This document shows, piece after piece, positions 5,266 through 63,946 of a stretch of 64,000 nt of DNA. The position numbers and the translations under genes were made by a program. The notes beneath the pieces were generated by a model. It made no database searches, was not told the origin of the DNA, and saw only the letters and a program-made list of their open reading frames with translations. Source of the stretch: Trichoplax adhaerens (Eukaryota; Animalia; Placozoa); the NCBI RefSeq assembly GCF_000150275.1, contig NW_002060945.1:4203397-4267396 (forward strand). The letters run 5' to 3'. Position 1 is the stretch's first letter, and each line of letters opens with the position of its first letter.

Positions 5266-8200
5266 TTACCACACTATTTTAGTATTTTGCAATTTCTTAT
5301 CTACATATGAACTAAATTTTCTTAGAAATTTCGGATACTCTCTTTTAGTAACAACCCTAACGACAGCCGGTGGTGCCCAACCACCCGGGTTCACTGTAAT
5401 AAAACAAAGAAATGTATATTATAAAATTTCAGCTTAACTAAATACGGCAGTAACGCTATTCATACATCGTAAAGACTACAATTAATATTATGATGAATAA
5501 AAAAATAAAACTCTCACATCCTTTGTAGCCTTTACTTACCATGAGCAATATATACAATCCTACTGGCGATATCATTACGAGTTAATTCCTCCAATGGACA
5601 ATCTGTCTTTCGAATAATTGTCTCGCAGTACATGCAAACTGTAAATTGAACGCGGACGTATTTCTTGTTCTGGTGACGTTGAAAAAAGTCAATAATTCAG
5701 TAGATAACTAGCGATTATAAATGATATATATGACAATTACCGTAGCAAGTGGGTGATCAATAGAATAGTTGACGACAATCCAAGGATCTACGCCGGTTGG
5801 GTTGCTGTCATTTTCTAATCTTACAACTGGTCGCATATGACTTGCGAAGCACATATCACGTTGTGCGGTAGGCCATACGCGTTTAATAAGTTGATGAAAA
5901 ACAAGCGTATCTTGAGATATCTCTTCAATTACCTTTGTCGACTCCAAGGTTGCTATTAAATTATTTCAAAATGTCATCACATCAGTCATACAAGCGTAAT
6001 AATTAAAATTGGTGGCTATTAAGCGTAATTTCTTACTTTCCCATTCCATCCTAACATCCTTGTCGAAAAATATATTACAAACTTCATGACCAGTGACACC
6101 CTAGATCGAAAAAAATTAATAATGTTTATAAAGCTAGCAACCAAACGTATGCTGTCATTGCGGTTTAGGACAGTGCATCTTACATCGACAATATGTTGAG
6201 CGCGTAAAGGATCCAAAGCTACGCCGTCTATCTCCAATTCACGTCTATAAACCTTAAAAAAAATTTAAACAAGAATCAATAAATTTGCTTTATTTATATA
6301 CTAGTAGTACATTATAAACTTGGTGAAAAGGATTATCGAATAGAATTATTACCTTCATTTCATTATCTTCATGAACCAAATTCCATTCTTCATTAATTTC
6401 TTCACGGACACAGCTTACATATTCGGATACTTTAGAATCCATCTGAAGTAAACAATCAAGAAAAATGTGTTAATTACACAGACATAATAATTCTACCATC
6501 TATTAGTAAAGCCAATAAGCATTTCATGTAAACATCTATTAATTTGATAACCTCTCTCATGAGAGTGGCTTTGGAGTCGTCTGGATTGTAAAAATCGATA
6601 TCATTCTAAGTAAAAAGCAAGTAACTATTAGAGAAGTTTCATCAAATGCAAATAATACGTTGTGCATAATCCTAAAGAATAACTGCGACTTCTTTTTGGT
6701 AGACTGTACATACTTGCTCATTTAACTCAGTGCCTTCCTTATCTAGGGCAGTTTCGACAGCATCGAAAAATTCCTCATCGGTCATCATACAGTTAGGACC
6801 TTCCTACTCAAAAAATAACACACCCAAAACATCATGCAATAGGAATAGATTAAAGAATGCCACAAGGCTAACAAAGGCAGGAAAATTCGTACGATTAACC
6901 TGGTAATCAGGACCCGCAGCAAGAGCTCTCTTTCGCGCATCTTCAAGCACCTGCTTGTACTCCTGTTGTAGCCTACGTCTTTTTTCCATTTCCTGCAAAA
7001 AATTAACTGCTATTAGTATTACAACATACGGTATTGTCAAATAAAAGGAGTCATGAAATCCTTTCATGAAAGCAATTGCTTACCCGTTCCAAGCGTTTAC
7101 GCCATTTATCTTCTCTAGTTAGCATTAAATCGATGCAGTGCGATAAAGTTGCTAAAATTCCAGCAGTTGTTGCTTTAAATGTGATTGATTCCCCTTTAAA
7201 GTCGATACCCGATTTCAATAATTCAAGTGCTGTAATGGCATCGATTCTCTCTTTTTCATCAATACTATTAGCCACTTGTGATATGTTATTTGAACCGGGA
7301 GAAGTAGAATAACTACTAGAAAACTGTAAAAATAATTTGTTGGATAAAAAAAATTTAGTTAGATTGGTTCCTTAATTAATTGTCTTACTTGTAATACAAT
7401 GGTTTATTTAGTATATTACATAACATTTACCCTAGTAAAATTTATTAACGATGATATCCTGGAGGTAGTATAGGTAGCTATTCTTGATGCTGATTTTCTA
7501 GGTGATAATTTGTATAGCGTTTTAGGTAACAAAGTTGTTCCTTCTGTTATCTCATCATCTCCAGAGTCTGCTTCATCTACTAATGAAGGTATGATTAATA
7601 CAAAGTTAGTTTGACACAGTCATTAACCATGACTATGATCATTTTGACAATCCTATGATTTCCAAAATTGATTTTGTCGCATTTTAGTTACTTCTAATGT
7701 CTTCACTAGGAGGTCGTAAAGAATCTGCCATGTCCGGTTCATTCCTTTTAAACTCTTCAATTTTATGCTCTGCCTCAACAACGGCATCAGAGCATTTATC
7801 AAAGAAACGTTGTAAAGTATCCACTTGCCGGCATAGAATTTCCCTATATGTCTCCATTTCCAAAAGTTTTTCTTTCAAATTTTTGTCCCGCTAAAATTAA
7901 ATCCAGTTCAATCCTTTAGCAATAACTCCTAACCAGTTAGTAATTGCGTAGTATTGTATTCTATCAGTTAAGGATAACAACAACACCAGTACCTTTGTAG
8001 ATGAGGTGGAAGCTGTTGATAGACTTGTGTAAGAGCTAATGGACATCATTGAGCCTTGACGTCTTAAATTTGTCTCACCGACATCAGGACTAGCTTCCTA
8101 ATATGTGGATTAGAAGGATATATGATAAGTATCATTACAGAGCTGATGATTATAACGTATCGACTGTTCAAGCATTGGAAATCCTAATATAACTAGTATC

Positions 8201-42800: not shown

Positions 42801-45800
42801 AATATTCGAGCTGATTGGTCATTTACTCCTGAATTAAAAGGTTATCACTATGTATCATGGGGTGCAACCCAATCTCGAACCACCGTGCCAAGTGATGATC
42901 AAAGTAATACCTTGCCAGCAAAACCTATTTATGGCCGCTTACTGGGTAAATTATCAGCTGCTGATTTTCAACAAGTTGTTAAGAAAGGTTTGCAAAGTTA
43001 TAGCCGTGAAAATGGTGAATTAAATATATTAATCTTTGATGAAGTACTCGATCTTATTGCTCGTGTTGAAAGAGTTATAACACAACCAGGTGGATCATTA
43101 TTACTTGCTGGACGTAGTGGCGTTGGTCGTCGAACTGCTGTTCGATTAGTTACCCATTTACATCAGATGACATTATTTACACCTAAAGTTTCACGCAATT
43201 ACGGCTTAAAACAATTTAGAAATGATTTAAAATCAGTCATGCAACAAGCTGGCGTTGAAGGAGAAAATGTCGTATTACTTATTGAAGATTATCAAGTTGT
43301 TGAAGCGGAATTTTTAGAAATTATTAACAGCTTATTAAGTGGCGGTGAAGTACCAGGTCTCTACTCGACAGAAGAATTAGAGCCATTATTAACCCCATTG
43401 CGTGATCAAGCATCACAAGATGGATTCCGTGGACCGTTGTTATCCTATTTTACATCCCGTGTACGCTCTAAACTTCACTGTGTCTTAATTATGGACAATA
43501 CTAACGCACAATTTTCAGTAGCATGCAAGTCTAATCCAGCATTTTATAAAGCTTGCTCATTCCAATGGATGGATTCATGGAGTACCAACAGTCTCATGAA
43601 AATACCTCAGATTTATCTAGATCCACACACTCAATCCGATTCAAGCATTAAAAATGTCTGGAATGATTTAGCTAAAGCGATCTTACACATCCATGAATCA
43701 GCACCAATCGATAGTACACCACGTCGCTTTATGACATTATTGCAAAGTTGTCAAGCTGTCTATAACATGAAACGTGAAGGTATTGAAAAACGCCAAAGTC
43801 GCCTTCAAGCTGGTTTATCGAAATTAAATGAAGCTAAATCATTAGTCGATGATTTAAAAAAGGATGCAGCTAAACAGAGTACATTATTAGCTGAGAAACA
43901 AGCTGATGCTGATCAGGCATTGCAAGAAATATCCACAAGTATGCAACGAGCTAGTGATCAGCGAAATGAAATGGAAATATTAAAACAAAAATTAGCTGAA
44001 GAATCGGCTAAATTAGAAAAAAGAAAGAAAGCGATTGATATCGAATTATCCGAGATTGAGCCATTAGTTCAATCCGCTCGTCAAGCTGTTGGTAATATTA
44101 AGCCAGAATCTTTGTCTGAAATACGTTCACTACGTATGCCTCCTGATGTTATACGTGATATTTTAGAAGGTGTACTAAGATTAATGGGCATTTTTGATAC
44201 ATCATGGGTCAGCATGAAATCCTTTTTAGCTAAACGTGGTGTTAAAGAAGAAATTTGCACTTTTGATGCACGTAAAATTACAACAGATATACGTGACAAT
44301 GTCAATGAATTACTCAAATCGAGTAATTCGTTCGATGAAAAAGTAGCTAAACGTGCTAGTGCAGCTGCTGCACCATTAGCTGAATGGGTTAAAGCCAATA
44401 TTAAATTTTCTATTGTATTAGAAAAGATTGAACCCCTTGAAACGGAACAAAATGCGTTAAAGCGTAACCTTGATAAATCACAAGCACGCTTAGATAAATT
44501 AGTTAAAGCATTAAATGCAGTGGATAAAGAGGTTGCAGCTATGAAAGAGCGTTTCGAGAAGCGTACAACAGAAGCGGCTAAATTAAAGATACAGCTAGAG
44601 AAAGCACAAGAAACGATTGATGCAGCTGAGACATTAGTGACTAAATTAGATGGGGAATATAAACGATGGTCAACTCAAGTTACTAACTTAACATCAGAAA
44701 TGAATCAATTACCTCGATGGTCATTAATTACAGCTGGTTTTATGACTTATCTTGGAAGTGCACCGGAAAATGTACGTGAAAATAAAATTCATGATTGGTG
44801 TCGTGCATGTAATGTAGATCGATTGGATTTGCGACGATTTTTGAGTACAGAAAGTGAGCAATTGTCCTGGAAAGCAGAAGGTCTACCGTCGGATAATTTA
44901 TCCATTGAGAATGCTATCTTTATTTTAAAGTCTTCTATAACACCATTTTTAGTCGATCCCTCGATGAGAGCAACCGATTGGTTAAAAACCCATTTAAAAG
45001 ATGCAAGATTAGAAATAGTCAATCAACAAGATCCTAACTTTACGACATCACTTGAGTTAGCGATACGATTTGGTAAAACATTAATTATCCAAGAAGTGGA
45101 TAATATCGAGCCTATATTAATACCATTATTAAGGAATGATTTAATCAGCCAAGGCCCACGTTATGTGATCCAAATTGGCGAAAAAGTTATCGACTATAAT
45201 GAAGATTTCAAGTTATATTTAGCTACACGTAATCCTCAACCGGAATTACCATCAGATGCTGCATCAATCGTGAACGAAATTAATTTTACAACAACGAAAG
45301 CTGGTCTAACAGCTCAATTATTAGCTATGACAATACAAAACGAGAAACCAGAATTAGAAGTACGCAAAATGGAATTTTTAAAGACAGAAGAAGAATTAAA
45401 AATTCAAGTGGAAAAATTAGAAGATTCCTTATTAGAAGAATTAGCCCAAGCTGAAGGCAATATCTTGGAAAATAAGGATTTAATCGAATCATTAAATAAA
45501 ACTAAAGCAAGTAGCATTACAATCGCTGAATCGCTACAAGAATCACTACGACTTCAATCCGCATTAGATCAAGAGCGTGATGTTTATCGTCCATTAGCCG
45601 AATATGGTAGTTCCTTGCTGTTTGTTATAACCGATCTAAGTAAATTAAATAATATGTACCGCTTTAGTTTAAGCTCCTTTTTACGCTTATTTCAACGTGC
45701 ATTAAAATCAGAACTTGATGCTGGTAATATTGAAATGCGAATTAAATTATTAATGTCATCGTTAAGATCACTAGTCTACGAATATGCATGTCGATCATTA

Positions 45801-48800
45801 TATAAAGCTGATCATTTAACATTTGCAATGCACCTTGTCCATGGCATTCGACCAGAATTATTCCAAGAACAAGAATGGGAATTCTTTTGTGGCCTGATTG
45901 TATCGGACGTCAACGTTCACAAACAAGAAGGAAGTAAACGATCTCATGAATTTTTACCAAATTGGTGCGATGCTGAATTAGCCTCATCGATTGCTGCATT
46001 GAAAACCACCTTCCCAACTTGGTTTCAAAATCTTAAATTAGACGATAATAATATTTGGAGTACATTTTCAAGGCATTCCCAATGTGAGAAAGAGTTTCCG
46101 TCTGATGTAACACGCAAAATTAGTGAGTTCCAACAAGTGTTAACTATTCAAGCTTTGCGCCCTGATCGTTTACAAAGTGCTATGAGCCTTTTTGCCGCAC
46201 GTGCACTCAATATGAAAGAATTGTCACCGCCGACATTAAATTTAAAACGATTGTATACTAATGAAACTGTAGCTGATGAACCAATCTTGATTATTATTTC
46301 ACCTGGTGCTGATCCATCACAAGAATTGCAAGATCTTGCTTCTAAGACTGTTGGCGAAGATAAATATCATCAAGTAGCAATGGGTCAAGGCCAAGCCGAT
46401 ATTGCTATACGCTTATTACGCGATTGTGCTCGAAATGGCGATTGGCTTTGCTTGAAAAATTTACATTTAGTAACATCATGGTTACCAATTTTAGAGAAGG
46501 AATTTAAATCGCTCGAACCGCATCAGGATTTCCGTCTATGGTTAACTTCAGAGGTTCATCCAAAGTTTACACCAATATTACTTCAATCTAGCTTGAAAGT
46601 AACTTATGAAGCACCTCCAGGTAAGTTCGAGAAATTGATCTTATCTGTGATCATTTTAAAATACGTTAGGATAATAACTTTTAATCTCATGTTGGAACTA
46701 TGTTTAACAATTTACTTATTGAATTTACTCGTATGTTAATATTGGCATCTTGTAATATAGGGGTAAAAAGAAATTTACAAAGAACATTAGAATCATGGTC
46801 AACCGATTTTTTCCAGAAAAGTAATTCACCAATTAGAGCACAAGCTTTATTTACTGCTGCATGGTTTCATGCTATTGTTCAAGAGCGTCGTAGTTATATC
46901 CCACAAGGCTGGTCGAAATTTTATGAATTTTCAAGATCTGATTTACGTTGTGCTGCTGAAGTCATTGAAAGGGTGTTGAAAAAATCCGGTAATGACTCAG
47001 TGAAGTGGGAATTTGTCCATGGCTTATTAGAAAATGCAGTCTATGGTGGCCGTATCGATAACCCATTTGATATTCGAGTACTTGAATCTTACCTCCATCA
47101 ATGCTTTAATAAAAGTGTAATTGGAGGCCAATCAGGCCGACGAAAACCACTCACCAATAATTTTAGCATGCCTCAATCATCACATTACCAAGATTACATG
47201 GATATGATCTCGTTATTATCCGATAATGATCAGCCTTCCTTGTTTGGTTTACCAGCTAATATTGAACGATCAATACAAAGATCAATTAGTACACAAGTTA
47301 TTAGTCAGTTGAAAGTATTGATGAGAGCTGATGCAATAGTTGATAAATTCGATAAAGAGAAATGGCAGACAGAATTAGGACCGATATTGCAGTTGTGGAA
47401 GAAACTCAATCAGGTATAAAAACTCGTACCGTATTTAACTACAGTTTCTAAGTAATATAGTGATACAGTACAATAGTTAAGAAATAAAATGTCCTATTCT
47501 TTAATACGTTATTCCTCCTTCTAGGGTACTAAATTACTACAAGAGAAAGGCTCATTCCCCTCTGGGAAAGCTGTTGATGAATCCCCAGTTACCGCTTTTA
47601 TTCAACTTGAACGATATAATGCTATTAAATTAATGCAGGTAAAAATATGAAAACTAGATAATTTATGGATTAATCCATGCCTACTTTATTGGTGACTAAA
47701 TCACGACAAAAAATAATTTGTTAATATACTCTGTCCTACACAGTCCGTTCATGGCTCTCTGTCTGGACTAAATAAAGTTATACGAGGAAATGCTCTACTA
47801 ACAACAGCAATAACCGCACTAGCTGGAGCGCTTCTTAAAAACGAGGTAACTTTTGCATTACAATAATTCTGGTTAATATTAACTATGCTTGGAGTGTATA
47901 AGCAAGTATTAAATAGAATATGGAAATGATTGTTGTCAATAATCATCTAAATCTAGGTACCAAGTAGTTGGAGCAATAAGTGGGACGGTCCAGAAGATCC
48001 TATGCAATGGTTACGCGCATTAGTAGCCAAGACGTTAGCATTAGGAACATGGGTTCAAAAATCTGAATCAGGATCTTTACTTTCAGAATCATTAGATTTA
48101 GCTGAACTATTTCATCCAGATACATTCTTAAATGCACTAAGGCAACAAACAGCAAGGTAAATAAGCGGTATTTGGAATACCCTTTTAATATAGATAGATA
48201 GCTTCTAATTAAACATATTTACACCATATGACTATAGAGGGACAAAATTATCCATGGATAATTTAAAACTCCAATGTTCATGGGATGGAGAAATTAAAGG
48301 AGCAATGCATCCAGTTAAGGTTTGTACCGACATACATCAAACAAACTGAAAAACTACATTCTTTTATACCGTTAAGAATTTAATAAAGATACCCTATAAT
48401 TATTACAAGCAAGAAACTGATGAATTTACTTCCTTTACAATAGATTACAGGCCTACAAATCGAAGGATGTATATTTGATGGTAGTCGATTTTCTGATTGT
48501 CAGCGTGATACTTCCAGTATATCAGCTGTGCCAGATTGCAAAGTAGCGTGGGTACCGAAGGTAATAAATGAAAAAATATTCTTGGGGTTGTTTTTAATGT
48601 AAAAGCTAGCGATTTGAATTTCCTTTATTACATATCTATGTTAATGTCTCTTAATCATGATATTAATACTAGGAAATGGTTAGTCCATACCCTGAAAAGA
48701 ACTGTATGCTACTCCCTGTATACTATGATACAAGTCGGGAAGGAATTGTAACTAAATTGAATGTACCATGTGGTGGTCAACAAATTAAATGGATCCAGTG

Positions 48801-51925: not shown

Positions 51926-54655
51926 TCACAACGACATATGACGAGACATCAACAGCTGCTGACTTTCTTCTCTTCTATCAGGCAGTTTAAAACGTTTGAC
52001 ATCACTCAGACATTCTTCAGACTTCCAAAGTCTATCATGGTTATAACGTCGTTTCCTTTTTCCCATATAATCTTTTCAAATAAACGAGAAAAATTTTACA
52101 AATAGAAGCAACAAGCAGAGATGTCAGGAAACATACATAGTACTGCAAGCACTGTAGGCAAATTTTATACGTTTATCTTAACAAAAAAGACTATATCGGT
52201 TAGAACGTTACCATAAATCACCAAGATAACAATGTATATCATATAGCAGTATTGAAGCAAGAATGATAAGTGCACTCATATAGGTAAGTAAGTTAAAGCA
52301 TTTTCTTACCTACACACCATACTACACACAATCAGAATGTAAACTAAAAAATTTAATCAAAAGTTATTATCTAGTGATACTGTTTTCCAAGGATGCATCT
52401 GTATATTGTATAGCTAATCTAATCTAGTGAACGGCTTACAAGATATGGTAAATATTGGTCAATGAGTTGTCACTTATCAGTAAATATTATTACGATACGG
52501 TATTACTGGTACTACATTTCGCTTATCATGTTAAAGTATTTAATGAACCCTAGGCGAGTCTAATGAAACCATTATAACAAAATTAAATTTTATCGATGTT
52601 ATTATTATTAATTTTCAAACTGAAACAATATGTGCATAATATCAGAGACCTCTCAAAATAAAAAATACGTATTGCCAAATTTCAGAAAAAAGCTAGCCAT
52701 CAACCCTGTTTCTTGATGAAAAGTATTGAACAATTCTCATGCATCATACTACATACTCATACACTGAGTCTACAAATTATATTATTGATTAATTATAAAG
52801 CTGTCCTGTTCTTGTAGTAATTTATGTTACAGTAAGTATGTACCGCAATTTTGATCTACAGTAGGACTAAGGAATAACGCAATAAGTACGGTGCCGGAGT
52901 AAAAATTAAAACAGCAGCTAGTTTTTCTAGGTTGTTCACTTCCGATGTAGATTGTGAAGTAGTAAAAGCACTGTACTGTGGGTAGAGTACTTTAAGTACT
53001 CTACTGTTCCAGCACTACAGGATTCTGCTAGTAACGAATGAAATTATTACTAAAGGCGTTACGTAAGGTTAAAATAATACGAATTAACATTGATTCTGTA
53101 TACATGGTAAATCAAAGCATAATGTACGTCTATGTAATCAATTACTGAAATCATAAAGGCTTCAAAGGATAAATTAATATAATTAATTAATAATACAGTA
53201 TAATGACAACTATGGTTAATAATATCATGGCTACTAACAGGGACTACTTCACTTTTTCGAGTAGTCCCTACCACTAATTCGCTATGGCTGTATGGATAGG
53301 CAAAGCATAAAGTAGGAGTTTTACTGCAGCAAGACGCTTTGTGCTGTTTTGAAAATGCGTCATGTACACAGCAGTATAGGGTACTATGAATACATGTCAT
53401 GGCGTCAACTAATGTCTGCTAGCTTTGTACCCATATTTCAAAACTATCACAATTACGAATGGGATAACATTATTAACGATAGTCACATAATCGTCGATTA
53501 GCGATCATTTTTAAAGCCGTTAACAAGTCAACAATACAGTAGAATTAGGCCCTAAGGGGATACTAAGGAGTAGACAATAGTAGTACCTACTACTCGTTTA
53601 AAATGATAATACGTACTTCGGGCGATTTAGAAGTCTTTTCAACAAAAAAGCTAGATGTAGGAATATTGTACTAGCCGATCGCATCTAACGGATCGATTGG
53701 TCAAGCAAGACTCCTAAGAACATTAGCATTTTGTAAAATTGAACTGCTATTTTTATACAATATCGAATATTGTACTACAAAATTTAAGATTTATAGAAAT
53801 GCCATAGAGTGTACAAATTACATTATTAGATATTAACTTGCTTATTGAAGAGGAAAGTTAAAAAAAAAATAATATCCATACGTAGGCAATCAAATAAAAC
53901 GTCAATATCCGTAACTTGAAAGGTATGAATGGGGTAAATTTACATATTTCCTATTCTAATAATCCTATTTCCTACTATCTCACGTAGTGTACATAAAATG
54001 ATTATCATAATTTTTTACAGCATCAAGATTGTTTCTATATGCAATGCTGTAGGAACTTACCAGTCATAACACTTGTAAACACCATTTTAGATTTATAGCC
54101 CGGTTTATTTCGCTCACTGCGGCGGTAATAAACTCCTTTCTTTGGGGGTAATCCATGACAACTACTTCCATTGCTTGAATAGTTATCAAGCTTAATTTCA
54201 CTTTGCTCAGATATAATTGTTTGATGTCTACCGGTATTACTGGTTGACGGCTTTGGGATAGAATTGTTCCGAAAGTTATCGTAGTTATTTTTGTCATTCC
54301 CATTAGTGTCGATCATACAACTTTCGTCAAGAATTTGATTTGTCCTTTCCTTATTGTGAGGAATGCCGTTGGCGTCAGAAATATTTTTGGATGGCGTTAG
54401 CTGATTACAAGTAACGGTACTACCATCATCGTCGACTTTTTGCGCGACATACCTAGTAGCGGTCGAATCGATCAATTTCCATTGGTAGGGCCCAGGTAAG
54501 GGAGTAAACCTTTCAAAGTCGAAATTCCATTTCTGACTTTTCTCAGCACGGATCTCACGAAGAGCTTTTTCCGTCTCTTCCCTTAATTCGACTGTATCGC
54601 AAGAACCAAACAAACAACGCCGGGCGCGATTATTACCGGTACGTTGCTGTTGCAT
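51926..54655 (-). CDS. Cip/Kip family CDK inhibitor (p21/p27/p57-like), 246 aa, 2 coding exons
   Basis: Exon 54655-54061 carries the CDI domain (RARRCLFG...KWNFDFERFTPLPGPYQW). Its phase-1 GTAAG donor joins an acceptor at 52072-52073; exon 52071-51926 reads DYMGKRKRRYNH...RHMSL*. Total 741 nt, in frame. Confidence 0.88.
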
Positions 54656-57129
54656 TGCTTTCTAGTTGAAGAGATGAACCGATTTTTAGTGTTTTTCTTA
54701 GCTGTGTTGTCTTCCTAATTCAATTGATGACTAAGATTGAGATTCGCTGCAAAGTAATGGCAATTAAGAGAATGCGCTGTTGTTGAGTTCTTCCACGGCT
54801 GGACATCCGCATTAAACAGATTAAAGAAAAAAAAAATTGTTATTAAAAGGTAGAGATTAAGACTGTCTTATTGTGGTTAAATTAACACTTATGTACTATG
54901 GCAAAAGGCTAGGAGTGTGTACAATAAGTTACTTTAGTGTTAATGAAAGACGCCTATTGTGTATTATGTACTAGAATTTAACGTTGTAGAAACCAATTAT
55001 AGCAGTATTGTTGATAATATGAATAAAGACGCCACGTCTACTTTGCATATCAACATAAAACAATCAGATATTTGTCTTTCCATTACTAATGCATATTGTC
55101 GAGTAATTGGGTTACAAATTGCAAGTATAAACTTGTTTCATATTAGCAGAGCAGTGAGTGAAATATTTTTTCACATCACAGGAGATTATGAAATGAAAAA
55201 GAAATCGGAATTAATCAAAAATTCTTCAATGTCGTTATCAATTTTATAACCCAAATACTATTATCAACAATTCCATGTGTTATTCCGTATTGCCTACTAT
55301 CTTTGTAGTTGTCAGTTCAATTAAATTTTAACGTTTGACATTGACAGAAATGCAATTTCAACTAGGGATTACACAACAATAAAATACAGACTGTGATGTC
55401 AAGGTTGAATATAGGTTACAGAAGGATATAAACTGCAATGATAACATCAACAAAATAGCATAAGTAACATCCAAAGTCGTCTCTATTTGGTGGTATCCAT
55501 CTCCGTACAAACCTTTCTATTCAAATTGTACACTCCAATTACATCAAAAATTGATCCGAAAATGGACTATCGATAGGGTGGCAATCTGATCTACATCAAC
55601 GTTCATAAGTAGAACTAGTAAAAATTAATCCCCCCCCCCCAAAAAATAATAAGACAAAGCTGCACTACAGTGCTGATCGATCGAATATGTCTACAATAAG
55701 TAAATAAATATAAATACGTATTGTTGGCAGTAGCCACGTAGTATAGTGTATTATACATGGCAGATCGGGTGATGCTGAACTAGTGTAGTGGACTACAACT
55801 TTTGACACACCACAACATAAAAACATTCAATCAATCACTGATAGATGGATAGACAGAACATACGGTAGGTTGATCAAAACAAAAGGCTAACAATAGAAAT
55901 GATTAATCATATCGCGTATTATCTATCGTACGGAGAATTTTTTATCTTTAATAAACAAATTTTTACAGCTAGCAGAAAGTTTTCTTATTTTAGATGTACA
56001 GTACAGTAAAAGATAAGTACCACCATATTCCACTTTTCTCATTAGAATGGCTACATTCGTAATATGCATTCTGCAATGTACAATACAGTACTACTGTATG
56101 TGTATGTATCCACCAATATTTGTAGTATTGTACAATGATGTACGCGTCTACTCTTTTCACCATCAGAACAAATTGCTTCAGAAGATCTTAACTGCAAAGT
56201 GGACACTGTCGGTTCTTAGTCGGAAAGTGAATGTTTTATCTAGTTTAACACAGAGATGACGAAGTACAAATGGGATAACATGTTATGTAACTCTGAATTT
56301 CAACATCGACAAGGATAGTTTGCGACATTTGCGGCTTAGTCAAGGCTTTCATTTCACATTATTGCATATTACATGGTACATTATTACAGCTAGTAAATTC
56401 CATTAGCACAGTAGCGAATCTCTAAATGGCGCATGGACTGACATTATACCTAGCAGTTAGTCTCCCAATGGGACGAATTGAACTCACTGACTGAAGCTAG
56501 CACACCATAAAGTAATTTCAATCAAGGTTTACAAAGTTGTCATTGCCGTATTGTACGAAAATACTGTACAGTAGGATTACTAACTTGAAGACATATTATT
56601 GTTATATAAATTATTATTATCATCAATATTTGGAAAATAATGAAAATACGTACTTGACGCGAATGCCACCAGCTTAAAATAATAGCTTTTATAGACTACT
56701 AATGAGAACTATGCCTTTCAATCCGGCGCATACCGTAATAGCAGTAGGATAGAATGAAGCAATTTGGTACCTTGGCACACGAGTAAAGTTAGGATAATCG
56801 CAGAAAATACCTCCAAAAAAGCCGTCTCGTTAATTTACTTGAAGCAAGTAACGTTACAAAACGAAATACTATTGATTGCCCAGAAATCGACACTGATTAA
56901 TACTGTACATTGCTCTACACATATTTCAGTAATTACTTTAGCCTAAAAGGATTTTGCTCCTTATCGTACTCATACAACTAAACAGAATTGAATGTGTCTA
57001 CTCAAATTGGGGTCAGTCAATCGTTATAACTGTAGTTTAGTAGTTAAGTAAGTCAATAAAAAGTCATTGACATCTTGCGTCAAATAGTATTGGTGCTTGT
57101 TTTGATGCTACATTATTAGATACAGCAAT

Positions 57130-57191: not shown

Positions 57192-59353
57192 TCCAATAAA
57201 CTCTATTTATATCAGTTGCACAGTCCAGTATTGTATGCGCATTTGTTAGACTCAAGTTGAGCAATTGTATTGAAAGAGAAACGTACGTGGTAGGCACAGT
57301 ACAGTAGTGACATTGTACTTTCATGTCCGCAACTTTAAAAAGAAAGATACAGTAGAACAGCAGCAGATCGAACGGCTGATACCGTACGCATTGAATTTTT
57401 ACTTTGCAAATGCTGTTGATACTCTCTAATTAGCTTGAATATCTGTAGTCCACACGCATCGATTATCGTATTGAATCAATCAAGCGTGAATACTTGTATC
57501 GTCTACTAGTATCACTATACAGCTTCAATGTCGACCAGGAACCACCATTAGCGTCTAAAGAGTACCGAGTGATTGTCAGGCAAGTTGTTTATTAGCACCA
57601 GTGCCGTCAACACCAGCACTTTTTCGACTGTCATTCACAGTCAATACTGATCGCTTTTGATTTGATTTTTACATATCAATAGATCTTGTGTAGAATGTAA
57701 GTAATATTACGCCTACCGACATTGATCGACTACTGTCCACTGTACACTGTACAGGTGGCTCTAGTAGTCTAATAAGCTACAGTACTGAATAGGAAAATGG
57801 GTTGGTAACGCGCACCGTACCGGTACATACTGTACAGTACAGTAAAAATAAATAGAAAATAAAATGCATCATTGCTGGCGTCCACTTTTTACAGTGCAGC
57901 GTACTACAAGGCATGGACAGTGAACAGTACTATACTGTAGTTACTTACTCAACAACAAACGCATGCAACTATGCAACATAATATTCTGTACTGTACAACA
58001 TGGCGTCCTCCAAATCAAGTTATCGTAGAAAATATCGTAAACAATCATTTTTGGTGCGTCCATTTCACTATCCTACCTTTTTTCGCCTCTGGCCGCGACA
58101 ATTTCGTAGTGGTCTTTGAAATTAGAAATTGAAAATGTCTTGATCCTTGGCAAGCTGTAGATTCTACTATTATTTCATCTTCTTGAGCATGTATTCAAAG
58201 AAATCAATTTTGCTTACTACGTTTTTCGACGATCCTCCTTCCACATTGAAAACGTTGCACTGACGTCGCAAGGAATTTCCTGTACAGTACAATACACTGC
58301 AAGTTGTCTGCAACTTGTAGCGTCTGACGGGCGTGCACTACTGTACACTCCACTGTACACTGTACAGTGTGTACTGTAGCAGCGATGCGTATCCCATACT
58401 GTACTATACACTACAGTGTACAGTATGGCAATATCAGAGGAGTTTATCAGCAAGGTCATCGTGCACTGTAGAAGACTGCCCTTTTCAGTACTGTACAGTA
58501 CAGTACAGTTGTATAGTACAGTACAAGTACTCTACAGTACTGCAATATTCCTCAGCGTGATACCGGCGTAACGGCGCCGTACTATCAGGTGTACTGTACT
58601 GGCATAAATCAATGGTACGATGTCCATGTGATCAGCGAAGGGACTGACAATATTTTTGTTATCCTTTATTTATTTTACCCTATGGAAGGAAAGGATAGTA
58701 CAGACTATAAACCCAGCAAGACGTCAAAGTAAAAAGGTCACCGTAGTCTGCAGAAAGCTTTTGTCATGCATGCAGTACAGTACACTTTCATGAAGCCAAG
58801 AAACGATCGAGCACGGAATGATAGCGATGAACAGACCTAGTGATCGTTTATTTCACTGTTTCTGCTTTCGTCGTCTCCTCATTACGGTAGGGTATTAGTA
58901 CAGTGTTACTGCATTGAGTATTAGTAAATTTTTACGCGCGAAATGACAGTAGTACTCAATGGACTACATTCACAGTGTGAAAAAAGCCCAGATGAAAGAA
59001 TGGCGGGAAAAAAATTTACGTCCTGTACAGTACTCAACTCAGAGTGTACAGTACTGTACTGTAAACCAGGTTGACCAGGTGCCATTACAGTACAGCACAC
59101 TACAGGCTACCGTATGCCTACTATACTGTACACTCTCTCTGTACTGTACAGTAGTCTACAGTATTCTGTACTGTAATTCACGGTAGTCGAGGGCCGTCGT
59201 AGACTCGTAGTACTGTACAAGTGTAATACACAAAACAATAATTCTATTGTACTGTAAGAGACGGACGGACTCCGACACAATCTGAAACATCGCTAGACGA
59301 TAGCCTTTTCTTGTTTTTCACTCCATTACTCACTTGTGCAATTTTAAAAGCAT

Positions 59354-59444
59354 ACTGTCAGGGGCGAATAAAGATAAAATTCCTAACCCTAACTCTAAAA
59401 CTCTTAGGGTTATGAATTTTATCCTTAGTAATCCCTGCTACAGT
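59354..59444. repeat. Fold-back inverted repeat containing telomeric CCCTAA/TTAGGG
   Basis: Arms gataaaattcctaaccctaa (59373-59392) and ttagggttatgaattttatc (59404-59423) pair at 19/20 positions. Imperfect outer pairing caggg/ccctg and actgt/acagt. Confidence 0.85.
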
Positions 59445-59510
59445 GCACTATACAGTACAGTACTGTAAATCGTACGGATCATAAAAACAGGAAAATGGAC
59501 TATCCACTGA

Positions 59511-59552
59511 TCCGCCCATCCGCCAACCCACTTCAAACTCCCGGCTATTTAT
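59511..59552 (+). promoter_or_regulatory. Candidate core promoter (GC boxes + TATA-like) of the AKIP1-like gene
   Basis: tccgcccatccgccaaccc followed by ctatttata, ~250 bp upstream of the ATG. Function is inferred. Confidence 0.4.
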
Positions 59553-59802
59553 ACTCGATGACGGTTTTTACTAGCTTTAATGAAATAGTTGATAGGCTAT
59601 GTCACTAAGCTTTCCATCTGGGCCACCGTACTACAGGCTTGCAGTCTACAGCAATACTATTACTGTAGTATTTCTAGCACTACTGTATACAGTACTATAG
59701 TTCGTCACACTACAGTACGTAGTATGTACAGAGTACAGTACAGTAAACTGTCGGAGGGTAAAATTAGGGACTAATCAATTCTAGTCTGATATCAGATTTC
59801 TG

Positions 59803-60180
59803 ATGGTCTTCGCAGGAAATCATGGAGAGAGAAGTAAGCCTATACCTTATACTGTACTAACCTCTGTAATCAAGGATCATAATTTAAGAGGAATTGAATA
59901 CATATAATAGAAAATGGGAGACATGCCCTGCAGTCGACTTGAAGTATAACGGGCTGGGCTCAAGTAAACCGTAGTTTATAACGTTACTCTTTGCTAAATA
60001 AAATATTATACAACGGTGGTCTTAATTTTTTGAGCAGTTGCAACTGATGAAAACGTTCGTGTCGATGTGCCCCCAGGAACATATGCCGTTACTGCAGGAA
60101 GATGGGGAGGTGAAAAAGATCATACTCACGTTGTCCACGTTGAACCTGGACAAAGTGTAGATTTGACGTTCGCTGTTTGA
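59803..60180 (+). CDS. AKIP1: AKIP1 (A-kinase interacting protein 1 / C11orf17) C-terminal-domain microprotein, 57 aa, 2 exons
   Basis: Exons 59803-59833 (GTAAG donor) and 60038-60180 (CAG acceptor) encode MVFAGNHGERIATDENVRVDVPPGTYAVTAGRWGGEKDHTHVVHVEPGQSVDLTFAV*. This closely resembles the human AKIP1 C-terminus as recalled (IEVYPGTYSVTVG...THVVAVDSGQSVDLVFPV*). The start codon is uncertain. Confidence 0.8.
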
Positions 60181-61859: not shown

Positions 61860-63946
61860 TTAATAACCAAGTTCTAGTTTAATTTTTATTGCTTTCTCTC
61901 GTTTAACATCAAATCTCTGTCGTCGACGTTCCTCATCAGCTAAACGATTCACTATAAGTTCCTTTCTTCGGCTAACTTCAGCATTCAGTTTAGCTGAAGC
62001 TTTATGATATTCCAGTTCTTTTGCTTGAATATACCGTTCATCTGCAATCTTTTCACGTTGATATTGCCTCCTTAGTCGATTTTCCTATAGGTAGGGATAG
62101 ACAGATATTTCCAGTTAATGTCATACATTTTAATGTTGTTACTTAGTTTACATACTTTAAATAGGATTTTTTAAAATGCTTAAAAGATAAATGAGTAACC
62201 GGGAGTTTTAATCTTTCATCCATAATGTAAAAGGAAATCTGTGTTAACCTACCTCAATAGCCTGAACTCTTTGAACTTTTTCATTTTCCTGTTGTATTTG
62301 CAATTGTTCTCTCTGATTTCGTTGCTGTTTTAAATATTCCAATCTTTTGGCTTCTTTTTCTTTCTTTTGTAATGTGCGCGAATCGTCCAAATCTCTTATT
62401 TTATTGTAATTTTTTCGTCGGCGGTCTATCAGTCGATTTTTCATTTCTTCATAATATTTTTTACGTTGTTTATCGAATTGCTCAAAGCCGGCCATCTTCT
62501 CTAATTTATGTTTTCTTCTGAGTTCATCCGCTGCTCGTTGTGTTTGCTCACGTTCAACTTCCTTCTGCACCTGTCGTTCATGCTGCAGCCTTTTAGTCTC
62601 TACCTTTTGCGCTTCTTTTTTAAGATACCTTTGGTGCTTTAAGTTAGTTAATCCGTCTTCTAATGTAGGCGCTTCGTATTTTATACGCTGTTGTTGTATT
62701 TCTTTTTGCTGATATTTCCACCAGTTTGGATAATCCGGATTTACCATTCGTATGTGATCCAAAAAATTACCTCTACTTTTAGGCTGTGGAATGTTAACTC
62801 GAGGTTCCTTTAATAATTTGGGCTGATATCGTTCAGTAGGTCCCGTGCCAGAAGGTGCGGCATACCAAGACCTCCAAGGAGGACGTTGAGTCTTGGTCTT
62901 GCTTTTCTGTTTTGTTTTGCAGTACGTTGACGTAGTACGTATAACTTCCTCATCATCATTCAGTCCTAATTCATCATACATTGTTTCCAATATATCAGGG
63001 TCAGAACTAATCAAATCATCTTCTTCTTCACTACTATAATAATTAGTTTCACGTCTTCCCGTAGGATCTAACGCATTTAGATAGCGCTCGATAGTCTGAA
63101 TTTGTTCGTCAATCCGAGAAGTCAGTTGATGATAAGGAAGATCTCGTGATGGAGGAGACAAATCTTGTGCATAGGAATTCATATTAAAATGATTTGTAGG
63201 AGTAGTTGATTGTGATCTACCGTAATACGTAGTGGATGTCATGTCAGGGAAACTTTGTGATCCTGGTGGAGGAAAAGGTCTTTTACTATAGATTTCATGA
63301 GAAGTGCTAGGTCTCATCAATTCATAAGTATCTTTATATAACGATTTATAGGTATTGCATGGAGCAAAGTCAGCGGGCCTTTGCATGGCAATATTTGAGT
63401 CCGTTGAATCCGCAATAATTTTATTCATTTCTCCACGTAAATGATTTGGAACCAATTGATCCATTGATAATTGTTCGTATAAAGCATTTGATATCCAAAC
63501 GGCTGAATTAGAATCAATAGTCTTTGTTAGACCACTCGAAAACACGACTATCATTGGTTCGATAGATTTGGACATTTTACCTAGGGATAGGAAATATTCA
63601 AAGTTCGATGAGTATTACTAGGAAATGAACTGTAGAACTATTTAAGATGTATGTTCATTTATAGTATGAATTTTTTCGTTAAATGATTTAAAAGAAACTT
63701 TAAGCACAGTATATAGTAGTATGCCTCACCAGTAAGAATTCTAGGATCGTTGCCCTCTAAGACAACAGCTGGAGCGTACTCGTACTTTCCGAGTTTTCTA
63801 GGTGCAAGAACTTTATCACCCAATTTGATGGGGTGCCGCCAAGCATCATTTAAAGCGATAATGTCATTTATATTAGTTTCCTGCTCGCTTTTTAATTTCT
63901 TCTTCTTGGGTAAGATTAAGTCAATCAAAAACTGTCCTTGGCTTAC
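61860..63946 (-). CDS. C11orf16-like protein (DUF4537-type domain + long charged coiled-coil tail); 5' part outside the window
   Basis: Exons 63946-63730, 63580-62253 and 62084-61860 are in frame. QETNINDII...HPIKLGDKVLAP...YAPAVVLEGNDPR...VVFSSG...AVWIS resembles the C11orf16 LRPGDKVLA...YGPGTVLLG...VHFWNG region as recalled. The C-terminus is E/K/R/Q-rich. Confidence 0.75.

Follow-up and report, generated by a model that had tools for sequence, protein, structure and literature searches.

A probable damaged copy of the AKIP1 gene underlies a 57-amino-acid open reading frame in the Trichoplax adhaerens reference sequence

Positions 59822 to 60180 of the stretch of Trichoplax adhaerens reference sequence analyzed here (64,000 nucleotides of contig NW_002060945.1, assembly GCF_000150275.1; i.e., the window) most likely represent a damaged copy of the placozoan AKIP1 gene (estimated probability, about 0.9), and the 57-aa open reading frame (ORF) found there would be a by-product of the damage and not a domain-only gene. 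In the mechanism that we propose, the loss of about 850 bp carrying exons 2 and 3 would have put exon 1 next to exon 4, and the loss of one A would have shifted exon 4 out of frame with the true ATG at 59822. An ATG located farther upstream (59803) would by chance lie in register with the shifted exon 4, giving rise to the 57-aa ORF. The features involved are listed in Table 1.

Table 1. Features of the AKIP1 locus in the window and its counterparts in other placozoan sequences (positions are those of the window unless another sequence is named)
Feature	Position	Strand	Basis or remark
CDK inhibitor (divergent neighbor)	54038..54661	-	Pfam CDI, E 7e-19
Upstream ATG of the 57-aa ORF, 19 bases before ATG 59822 and out of frame with it	59803..59833	+	C at -3 (weaker context)
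Probable true first coding exon of AKIP1, ATG GAG AGA GAA (MERE), phase 0, donor GTAAGC at 59834	59822..59833	+	Match to contig L015, splice phase
Composite "intron" (5' part of intron 1 fused to ~30 bases from the 3' end of intron 3)	59834..60037	+	blastn and global alignment to H2
About 850 bp (854 by global alignment) missing relative to H2	60006..60012		blastn and global alignment
Two 1-nt losses in the intron remnant (C before 60019, A before 60029)	60019..60029		Alignment to H2
Last coding exon (exon 4), one A lost at 60041-43	60038..60180	+	Profile match, H2 alignment
Gene with DUF4537 (C11orf16-like; convergent neighbor)	62247..63946	-	Pfam PF15057, E 9e-15, on 63662-63946
AKIP1 gene of Trichoplax sp. 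H2	GCA_003344405.1, NOWV01000094.1, L013:3602-4287	-	Annotated, 152 aa, Pfam PF27911
AKIP1 gene of contig L015	L015, 833-1941	-	Head to head with CDK inhibitor (6656-7366)

The preliminary description of this locus had proposed a two-exon ORF of 57 aa with GT-AG splice sites, and its coordinates and splice sites are all correct (ATG, 59803-05; donor GT, 59834; acceptor AG, 60036-37; stop codon TGA, 60178-80). The first exon provides ten codons (MVFAGNHGER) and one base before the GTAAGC at 59834, a T-rich tract and a CAG ending at 60037 close the intron, and the second exon reads (A|TT=I)ATDENVRVDVPPGTYAVTAGRWGGEKDHTHVVHVEPGQSVDLTFAV followed by TGA (57 codons for the whole ORF). The surrounding window is AT-rich eukaryotic DNA without gaps. 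The reading frame of the second exon is open only from 60034 (a TGA occupies 60031-33) and there is no in-frame ATG inside the exon; therefore, an upstream coding exon is needed. A scan with a generic donor model identified 59834 as the nearest decent donor upstream of this exon. Since an ATG is available to it in both phase 0 and phase 1, the donor alone cannot discriminate between possible starts, and the sole support for a first exon read in the 59803 frame is the open frame together with the good donor.

The second exon (60038-60180) is, as judged from profile and database matches, a true terminal exon of the AKIP1 family. We aligned 12 full-length AKIP1-like proteins, including the named AKIP1 proteins of Latimeria and Rhinophrynus, and used the resulting family profile to scan the 4,576 ORF pieces of the window; the exon matched with 72.6 bits (E 7e-21). 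This significant match to a family model, together with relatives that are named AKIP1 or carry the Pfam tag PF27911, bears out the preliminary assignment of the peptide to the AKIP1 C terminus. The exon retains all of the invariant or near-invariant AKIP1 residues (8/8). In a leave-one-out test it scored 90.9 bits (rank 9/36), and simulation limited its neutral divergence to less than about 5%; on the basis of these two results, we conclude that the exon shows no decay. It is present as a single copy in the 105.6-Mb genome.

Database searches with the exon pointed to the same family. A word search returned one 65-aa ORF (63% identical), the Pfam tag of which (PF27911) is labeled AKIP1. A full HMMER search returned 57 hits, about thirty of which align at their extreme C terminus; the relatives comprise proteins named AKIP1 (Latimeria and Rhinophrynus) or "AKIP1-like" (Ptychodera and Amphiura), as well as proteins of Solemya, Watersipora, Rhopilema, and Sanderia. 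Precomputed PF27911 tags are found on relatives and on the gene at the same locus in Trichoplax sp. H2. The remaining HMMER hits are long multi-repeat proteins, bacterial ones among them. A sequence search of the PDB with the exon gave no match, and a scan against Pfam models that did not include PF27911 gave, as its best result, a sub-threshold match to the carboxypeptidase regulatory-like domain (CarboxypepD_reg; PF13620). We rejected this domain as an identity for the exon: the score was 19.7 bits against a cutoff of 32.3, and the match (E 1e-3) covered half of the profile, positions 44-80 of 82, corresponding to the second half of the beta-sandwich. We take the multi-repeat proteins to be the probable source of this weak likeness. 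As a separate observation, the sub-threshold beta-sandwich likeness (60040-60177) and the multi-repeat hits may point to a remote origin of the AKIP1 hairpin described below.

Structure prediction for the exon alone gave a beta-hairpin (pLDDT, 86.8), and a predicted model of a full-length jellyfish member contained three helices and a confident C-terminal hairpin that was not packed on them (pTM, 0.27). A Foldseek search with the 46-aa model yielded no match at E <= 0.001. Thus, in contrast to the beta-sandwich of PF13620, the models of the AKIP1 exon give one hairpin and no significant structural match. A small beta-rich domain had been suggested for this exon; the models depict the C-terminal part as a hairpin module and not as a domain of globular fold.

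The exon had also been described as bearing the signature of vertebrate AKIP1. The match to AKIP1 holds, and the AKIP1 proteins of Latimeria and Rhinophrynus are direct matches of the window exon; however, the signature is not restricted to vertebrates, as members that are named or Pfam tagged occur in a hemichordate, an echinoderm, a bivalve, a bryozoan, and jellyfish. The invertebrate AKIP1-like set comprises proteins of Ptychodera flava (XP_070531549.1), Amphiura filiformis, Rhopilema esculentum, Sanderia malayensis, Solemya velum, and Watersipora subatra, and their usual size is about 157 aa (range, ~157 to 166 aa). The family is represented in placozoans, in jellyfish, and in several phyla of Bilateria and is therefore pan-metazoan and pre-bilaterian. 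Our searches of the literature, including the supplements of a placozoan cell atlas, found no report on AKIP1 in placozoans or other invertebrates.

The order of motifs is fixed in the 12-member alignment (i.e., LCRS..LERA.RR.VEW, IDDAF..QFM..RQCKRYY, HC.RFH, KNP|LQ, and the C-terminal module), and the intact placozoan gene described below has the same order as the invertebrate AKIP1-like proteins. The invertebrate genes also share with those of placozoans a last intron in phase 0 that directly precedes a Leu codon. This intron lies directly before the Leu of NP|LQ in six other, non-vertebrate species. Among them are Ptychodera, Solemya, Watersipora, and the sources of a cnidarian and one further contig, and in those named here the last exon often begins with TTGCAG or TTGCAA. 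Placozoan AKIP1 differs from the genes of other invertebrates in that two middle exons are fused into one and the first exon has 4 codons, while the window copy differs from them in having the first and last exons only. Placozoan AKIP1 introns measure 80 to 520 bp; the last intron of the Ptychodera flava AKIP1-like gene (L010:13440-33643) is ~20 kb long and holds other annotated genes.

The last exon is the best-kept part of AKIP1 (about 75% identical to jellyfish). According to published descriptions of human AKIP1/BCA3 (210 aa), the human last exon encodes aa 165-210, i.e., 46 residues, compared with an extent of 46 to 47 residues in placozoans, and this terminal exon is homologous (PGTY..THVV..GQSVDL.F.., with the stop codon two residues after F). 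The last exon of the window, which at 46 aa equals the human one in size, is the counterpart of human AKIP1 exon 6. Vertebrate AKIP1 exceeds the placozoan protein in length and is more diverged in its N-terminal two thirds.

The exons that should precede the terminal exon were sought throughout this assembly. The profile scan of the ORF pieces of the 64-kb window yielded a next best score of 7.5 bits, the same profile found no other AKIP1 exon in the whole genome assembly, tblastn of ten full-length relatives against the window did not find upstream exons, and the ORFs upstream of the last exon had no Pfam match. The absence of an exon for the N-terminal and middle regions, as noted in the preliminary description, therefore extends from the window to the genome. 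Among the motifs, the N-terminal helix (L..RA..R.V.W) occurs neither in the window nor elsewhere in the assembly, and the middle motifs (I(D/E)DAF..FM..RQC.RY and H..[RK][FY]H) are likewise missing from the window, where no further piece exceeds 7.5 bits. As a control, a leave-one-out profile recovered all of the exons at the Ptychodera locus (79.8, 40.2, 35.5, and 30.8 bits), which indicates that the missing exons are truly absent from the assembly; the missing N-terminal helix motif is explained by the ~850-bp gap. Look-alikes at 58953-59183, 59530-41 (NPLQ), and 59788-99 (DIRF) were weak and not above noise.

We also considered a transposon that displaced the exons, the candidate being the microsatellite-rich stretch at 58.2 to 59.8 kb, and rejected it on finding only short simple-repeat matches elsewhere. 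This unique stretch (58150-59790) is dense in imperfect, palindromic simple repeats of the (CAGTA)n / TACAGTACTGTA type; its short motif arrays occur at dozens of genome sites, while the entire stretch is not a repeated element. Most of the region's indels between the sequenced strain (Grell-type H1) and H2 fall within it.

An intact gene is found in Trichoplax sp. H2, a lineage to which the window is 98.3 to 99.7% identical over 22 kb (blastn). The H2 AKIP1 gene occupies the same chromosomal place as the window copy, between the CDK inhibitor and the DUF4537 gene, and the H2 locus differs from the window by about 850 additional bases, which carry exons 2 and 3, and by the A of the last exon. 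The H2 exons match the family profile with 25.2 bits (exon 2; 45 aa), 68.5 bits (exon 3; 60 aa), and 75.9 bits (the third large exon). H2 and the window are identical at 101/101 bases around exon 1 and at 143/143 bases of exon 4 apart from one missing A. The annotated H2 model begins at exon 2 and lacks an ATG.

A third placozoan sequence was provided by a metagenome contig (L015; ENA ERZ27263980, k141_1139316; 7,427 bp), in which AKIP1 again lies head to head with a CDK inhibitor that is 49% identical to its Trichoplax counterpart. On the basis of this synteny and similarity, the contig presumably derives from a distant placozoan lineage. Its exons score 27.1, 68.0 (exon 3), and 74.8 bits against the family profile and have canonical GT-AG sites. 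The first exon of this contig, ATG GAA ACA GAG|GTTAGA (METE), is located about 390 bp upstream of its exon 2. From its conservation and from the splice phase, we infer that the MERE exon of the window (59822..59833) is the first coding exon of the Trichoplax gene: the ATG at 59822 has A at -3 and G at +4, and the acceptor of exon 2 is in phase 0 (tag|AAG) in both H2 and L015, which fits a phase-0 exon 1. Read in this manner, placozoan AKIP1 is a protein of 156 aa (MERE + 45 + 60 + 47) encoded by four phase-0 coding exons, with an N-terminal helix (...LKRAQERKIDW) in exon 2; IEDAF..HFM..RQCRRYF, HCCKFH, and RRNP in exon 3; and LQTDENVRVDVPPGTY...DLTFAV in exon 4. In the comparison of H2 with L015, 46/47 aa of the last exon are identical (pN, 0.009; pS, 0.51), and exon 3 has a pN of 0.062 versus a pS of 0.91; on these ratios, placozoan AKIP1 is under strong purifying selection. 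The possibility that the ~850-bp segment is an insertion specific to H2 is contradicted by L015 and by all of the other phyla examined.

The CDK inhibitor, which is 99% identical to "Cyclin-dependent kinase inhibitor 1B [Trichoplax sp. H2]," served as the anchor for reaching the syntenic loci in other placozoans. In or near its gene region, at 52538-52551, H2 has about 47 bases and the window about 12. On the other side of AKIP1 and in tail-to-tail orientation with it, the H2 counterpart of the DUF4537 neighbor (L013:1-1922) is annotated as a protein of > 978 aa with VWA and DUF4537. In Ptychodera, the 8 kb downstream of the AKIP1-like gene yielded no DUF4537.

The alignment to H2 locates the lesions of the window copy. 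The stretch that is missing from the window (L013 ~4632-3774 in H2, minus strand) comprises exons 2 and 3 with intron 2 between them, the remainder of intron 1, and the greater part of intron 3, and a short imperfect direct repeat (TATACAAC / TATAACGAAC) is present at both of its boundaries in H2. The A lost from the last exon turns TTG CAA ACT GAT of H2 into TTG CAA CT GAT (i.e., CAAACT to CAACT). The 1-nt losses before 60019, 60029, and 60042 form a cluster, and the next 3.7 kb downstream are free of indels. The window exon itself indicates the same defect: it begins with TTGCAA (L-Q) in phase 0, and the conserved frame is one base off the ancestral splice, with no phase-0 acceptor available that would restore the conserved frame of the last exon. 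The site of the frameshift predicted from the splice phase is the site of the lost A in the comparison with H2. A frame anomaly in an undecayed exon suggests a very recent one-base loss or an error. A choice between a young pseudogene and a frameshift rescued by a new exon, which could be posed from the window exon, was superseded by the comparison with H2.

These lesions bear directly on the proposal that AKIP1 evolved here into a stand-alone, beta-rich microprotein of 57 aa encoded by the exons 59803-59833 and 60038-60180, which we now consider extremely improbable. Several properties of the locus are those expected of such a gene: the ORF is open and has a good donor and acceptor, the nearest decent upstream donor (59834) has an ATG in its phase-1 frame, a confident hairpin is predicted for the C-terminal exon in isolation, and this exon lacks decay. 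However, a full four-exon gene is present both in H2, which is 99% identical, and in the distant placozoan of L015, under strong purifying selection, and the additional coding exons that yield a full-length protein are thus found in the sister lineage itself. The donor at 59834 also belongs, in phase 0, to the true exon 1, which accounts for it. Moreover, the 57-aa ORF requires both lesions, and among the three placozoan sequences compared these occur together in this assembly only, for which reason we regard the ORF as a by-product. A conservation test for small ORFs gave a concordant result, in that the start codon and frame of the ORF are not conserved in H2 or L015: the counterpart of the ATG at 59803 is absent in L015, and in H2, where it is present and identical, the frame enters exon 2 as x|AA GGT ATA TAA and ends after 13 codons. 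The same splice made from the true ATG at 59822 would give a 44-aa out-of-frame product.

What the intact gene does in placozoans can be proposed by homology to human AKIP1/BCA3. Human AKIP1 exon 6 (aa 165-210) is required for binding of the PKA catalytic subunit (PKAc) and for nuclear localization (PMC5923506); the PKAc and p65 sites have been mapped to exons 5/6 and exon 4, respectively, and the p65 site is the H.YRYH peptide of exon 4 (PMC3083391). By homology, binding to the N-terminal helix of the PKA catalytic subunit would require the module encoded by the placozoan last exon, and the H..[RK][FY]H of placozoan exon 3 probably corresponds to the human p65-binding peptide. The high level of conservation of the last exon between distant placozoans (46/47 aa) fits the PKAc-binding role described in humans.

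A variant of the microprotein proposal is that the deletion allele is real, the locus is transcribed, and leaky use of the ATG at 59803 produces an accidental C-terminal-only AKIP1 peptide of 57 aa. The reading frames fit, and PKAc binding in humans depends on the last exon (PMC5923506). This variant would need a real deletion, a transcript that escapes decay, and initiation at the weaker upstream ATG; in addition, the human PKAc determinant also covers the end of exon 5 (aa 150-179), and the full-length model has no sign of a self-sufficient hairpin domain (pTM, 0.27). We consider it improbable, if a little less so than an evolved microprotein. If true, it would amount to a natural experiment that uncouples the PKA-binding end of an adaptor from the rest.

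For the damaged copy that we favor, the lesions could be either a real deletion allele or an artifact of the Sanger assembly, and we rate these two origins as about equally probable. That the deletion and the 1-nt losses were real in the sequenced animal, forming a null or hypomorphic allele that was plausibly heterozygous in a clonal asexual lineage, has in our estimation slightly under an even chance. The window is a contiguous sequence free of Ns; the 850-bp stretch is absent from the entire assembly; and its flanking short direct repeats are as in slippage or microhomology-mediated deletion. Both Trichoplax lineages are reported to be heterozygous and long asexual (PMC6057997), a condition in which masked loss-of-function alleles can persist, and the haplotype with the null allele could be the one that was assembled. 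However, one substitution and several small indels are crowded into about 40 bp to either side of the junction, while the next 3.7 kb and the aligned part (41933-46736) of a 9.3-kb dynein exon are indel-free, and such an indel cluster looks like low-quality read ends that were misjoined. A real loss is also at odds with the strong constraint on AKIP1 among placozoans, and the absence of the stretch from the assembly is equally explained by a coverage gap.

The state of the reference is relevant here. The H1 and H2 genomes are 99.1% identical and the H2 gene models are evidence based, while the H1 reference is known to have missing data, whole genes included (PMC6057997). Among the genes on H2 scaffolds that lack a counterpart in the H1 reference is a PKA catalytic subunit gene (PMC6057997). 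Since that gene is also missing from H1, the reference is incomplete for both AKIP1 and its presumed partner. Exact look-ups of the H2 single-exon ORFs and of nearby ORFs for reads or contigs of the sequenced strain returned no record.

Nothing described here is new in kind, as the AKIP1 gene is already annotated in H2 and the family is covered by Pfam. The consequences concern how gene content is read from this reference: a survey based on it would list AKIP1 as missing, truncated, or "domain-only" for Trichoplax adhaerens. The correction is that placozoans have a normal, strongly constrained AKIP1 orthologue, and the reference sequence at this locus is to be flagged as defective.
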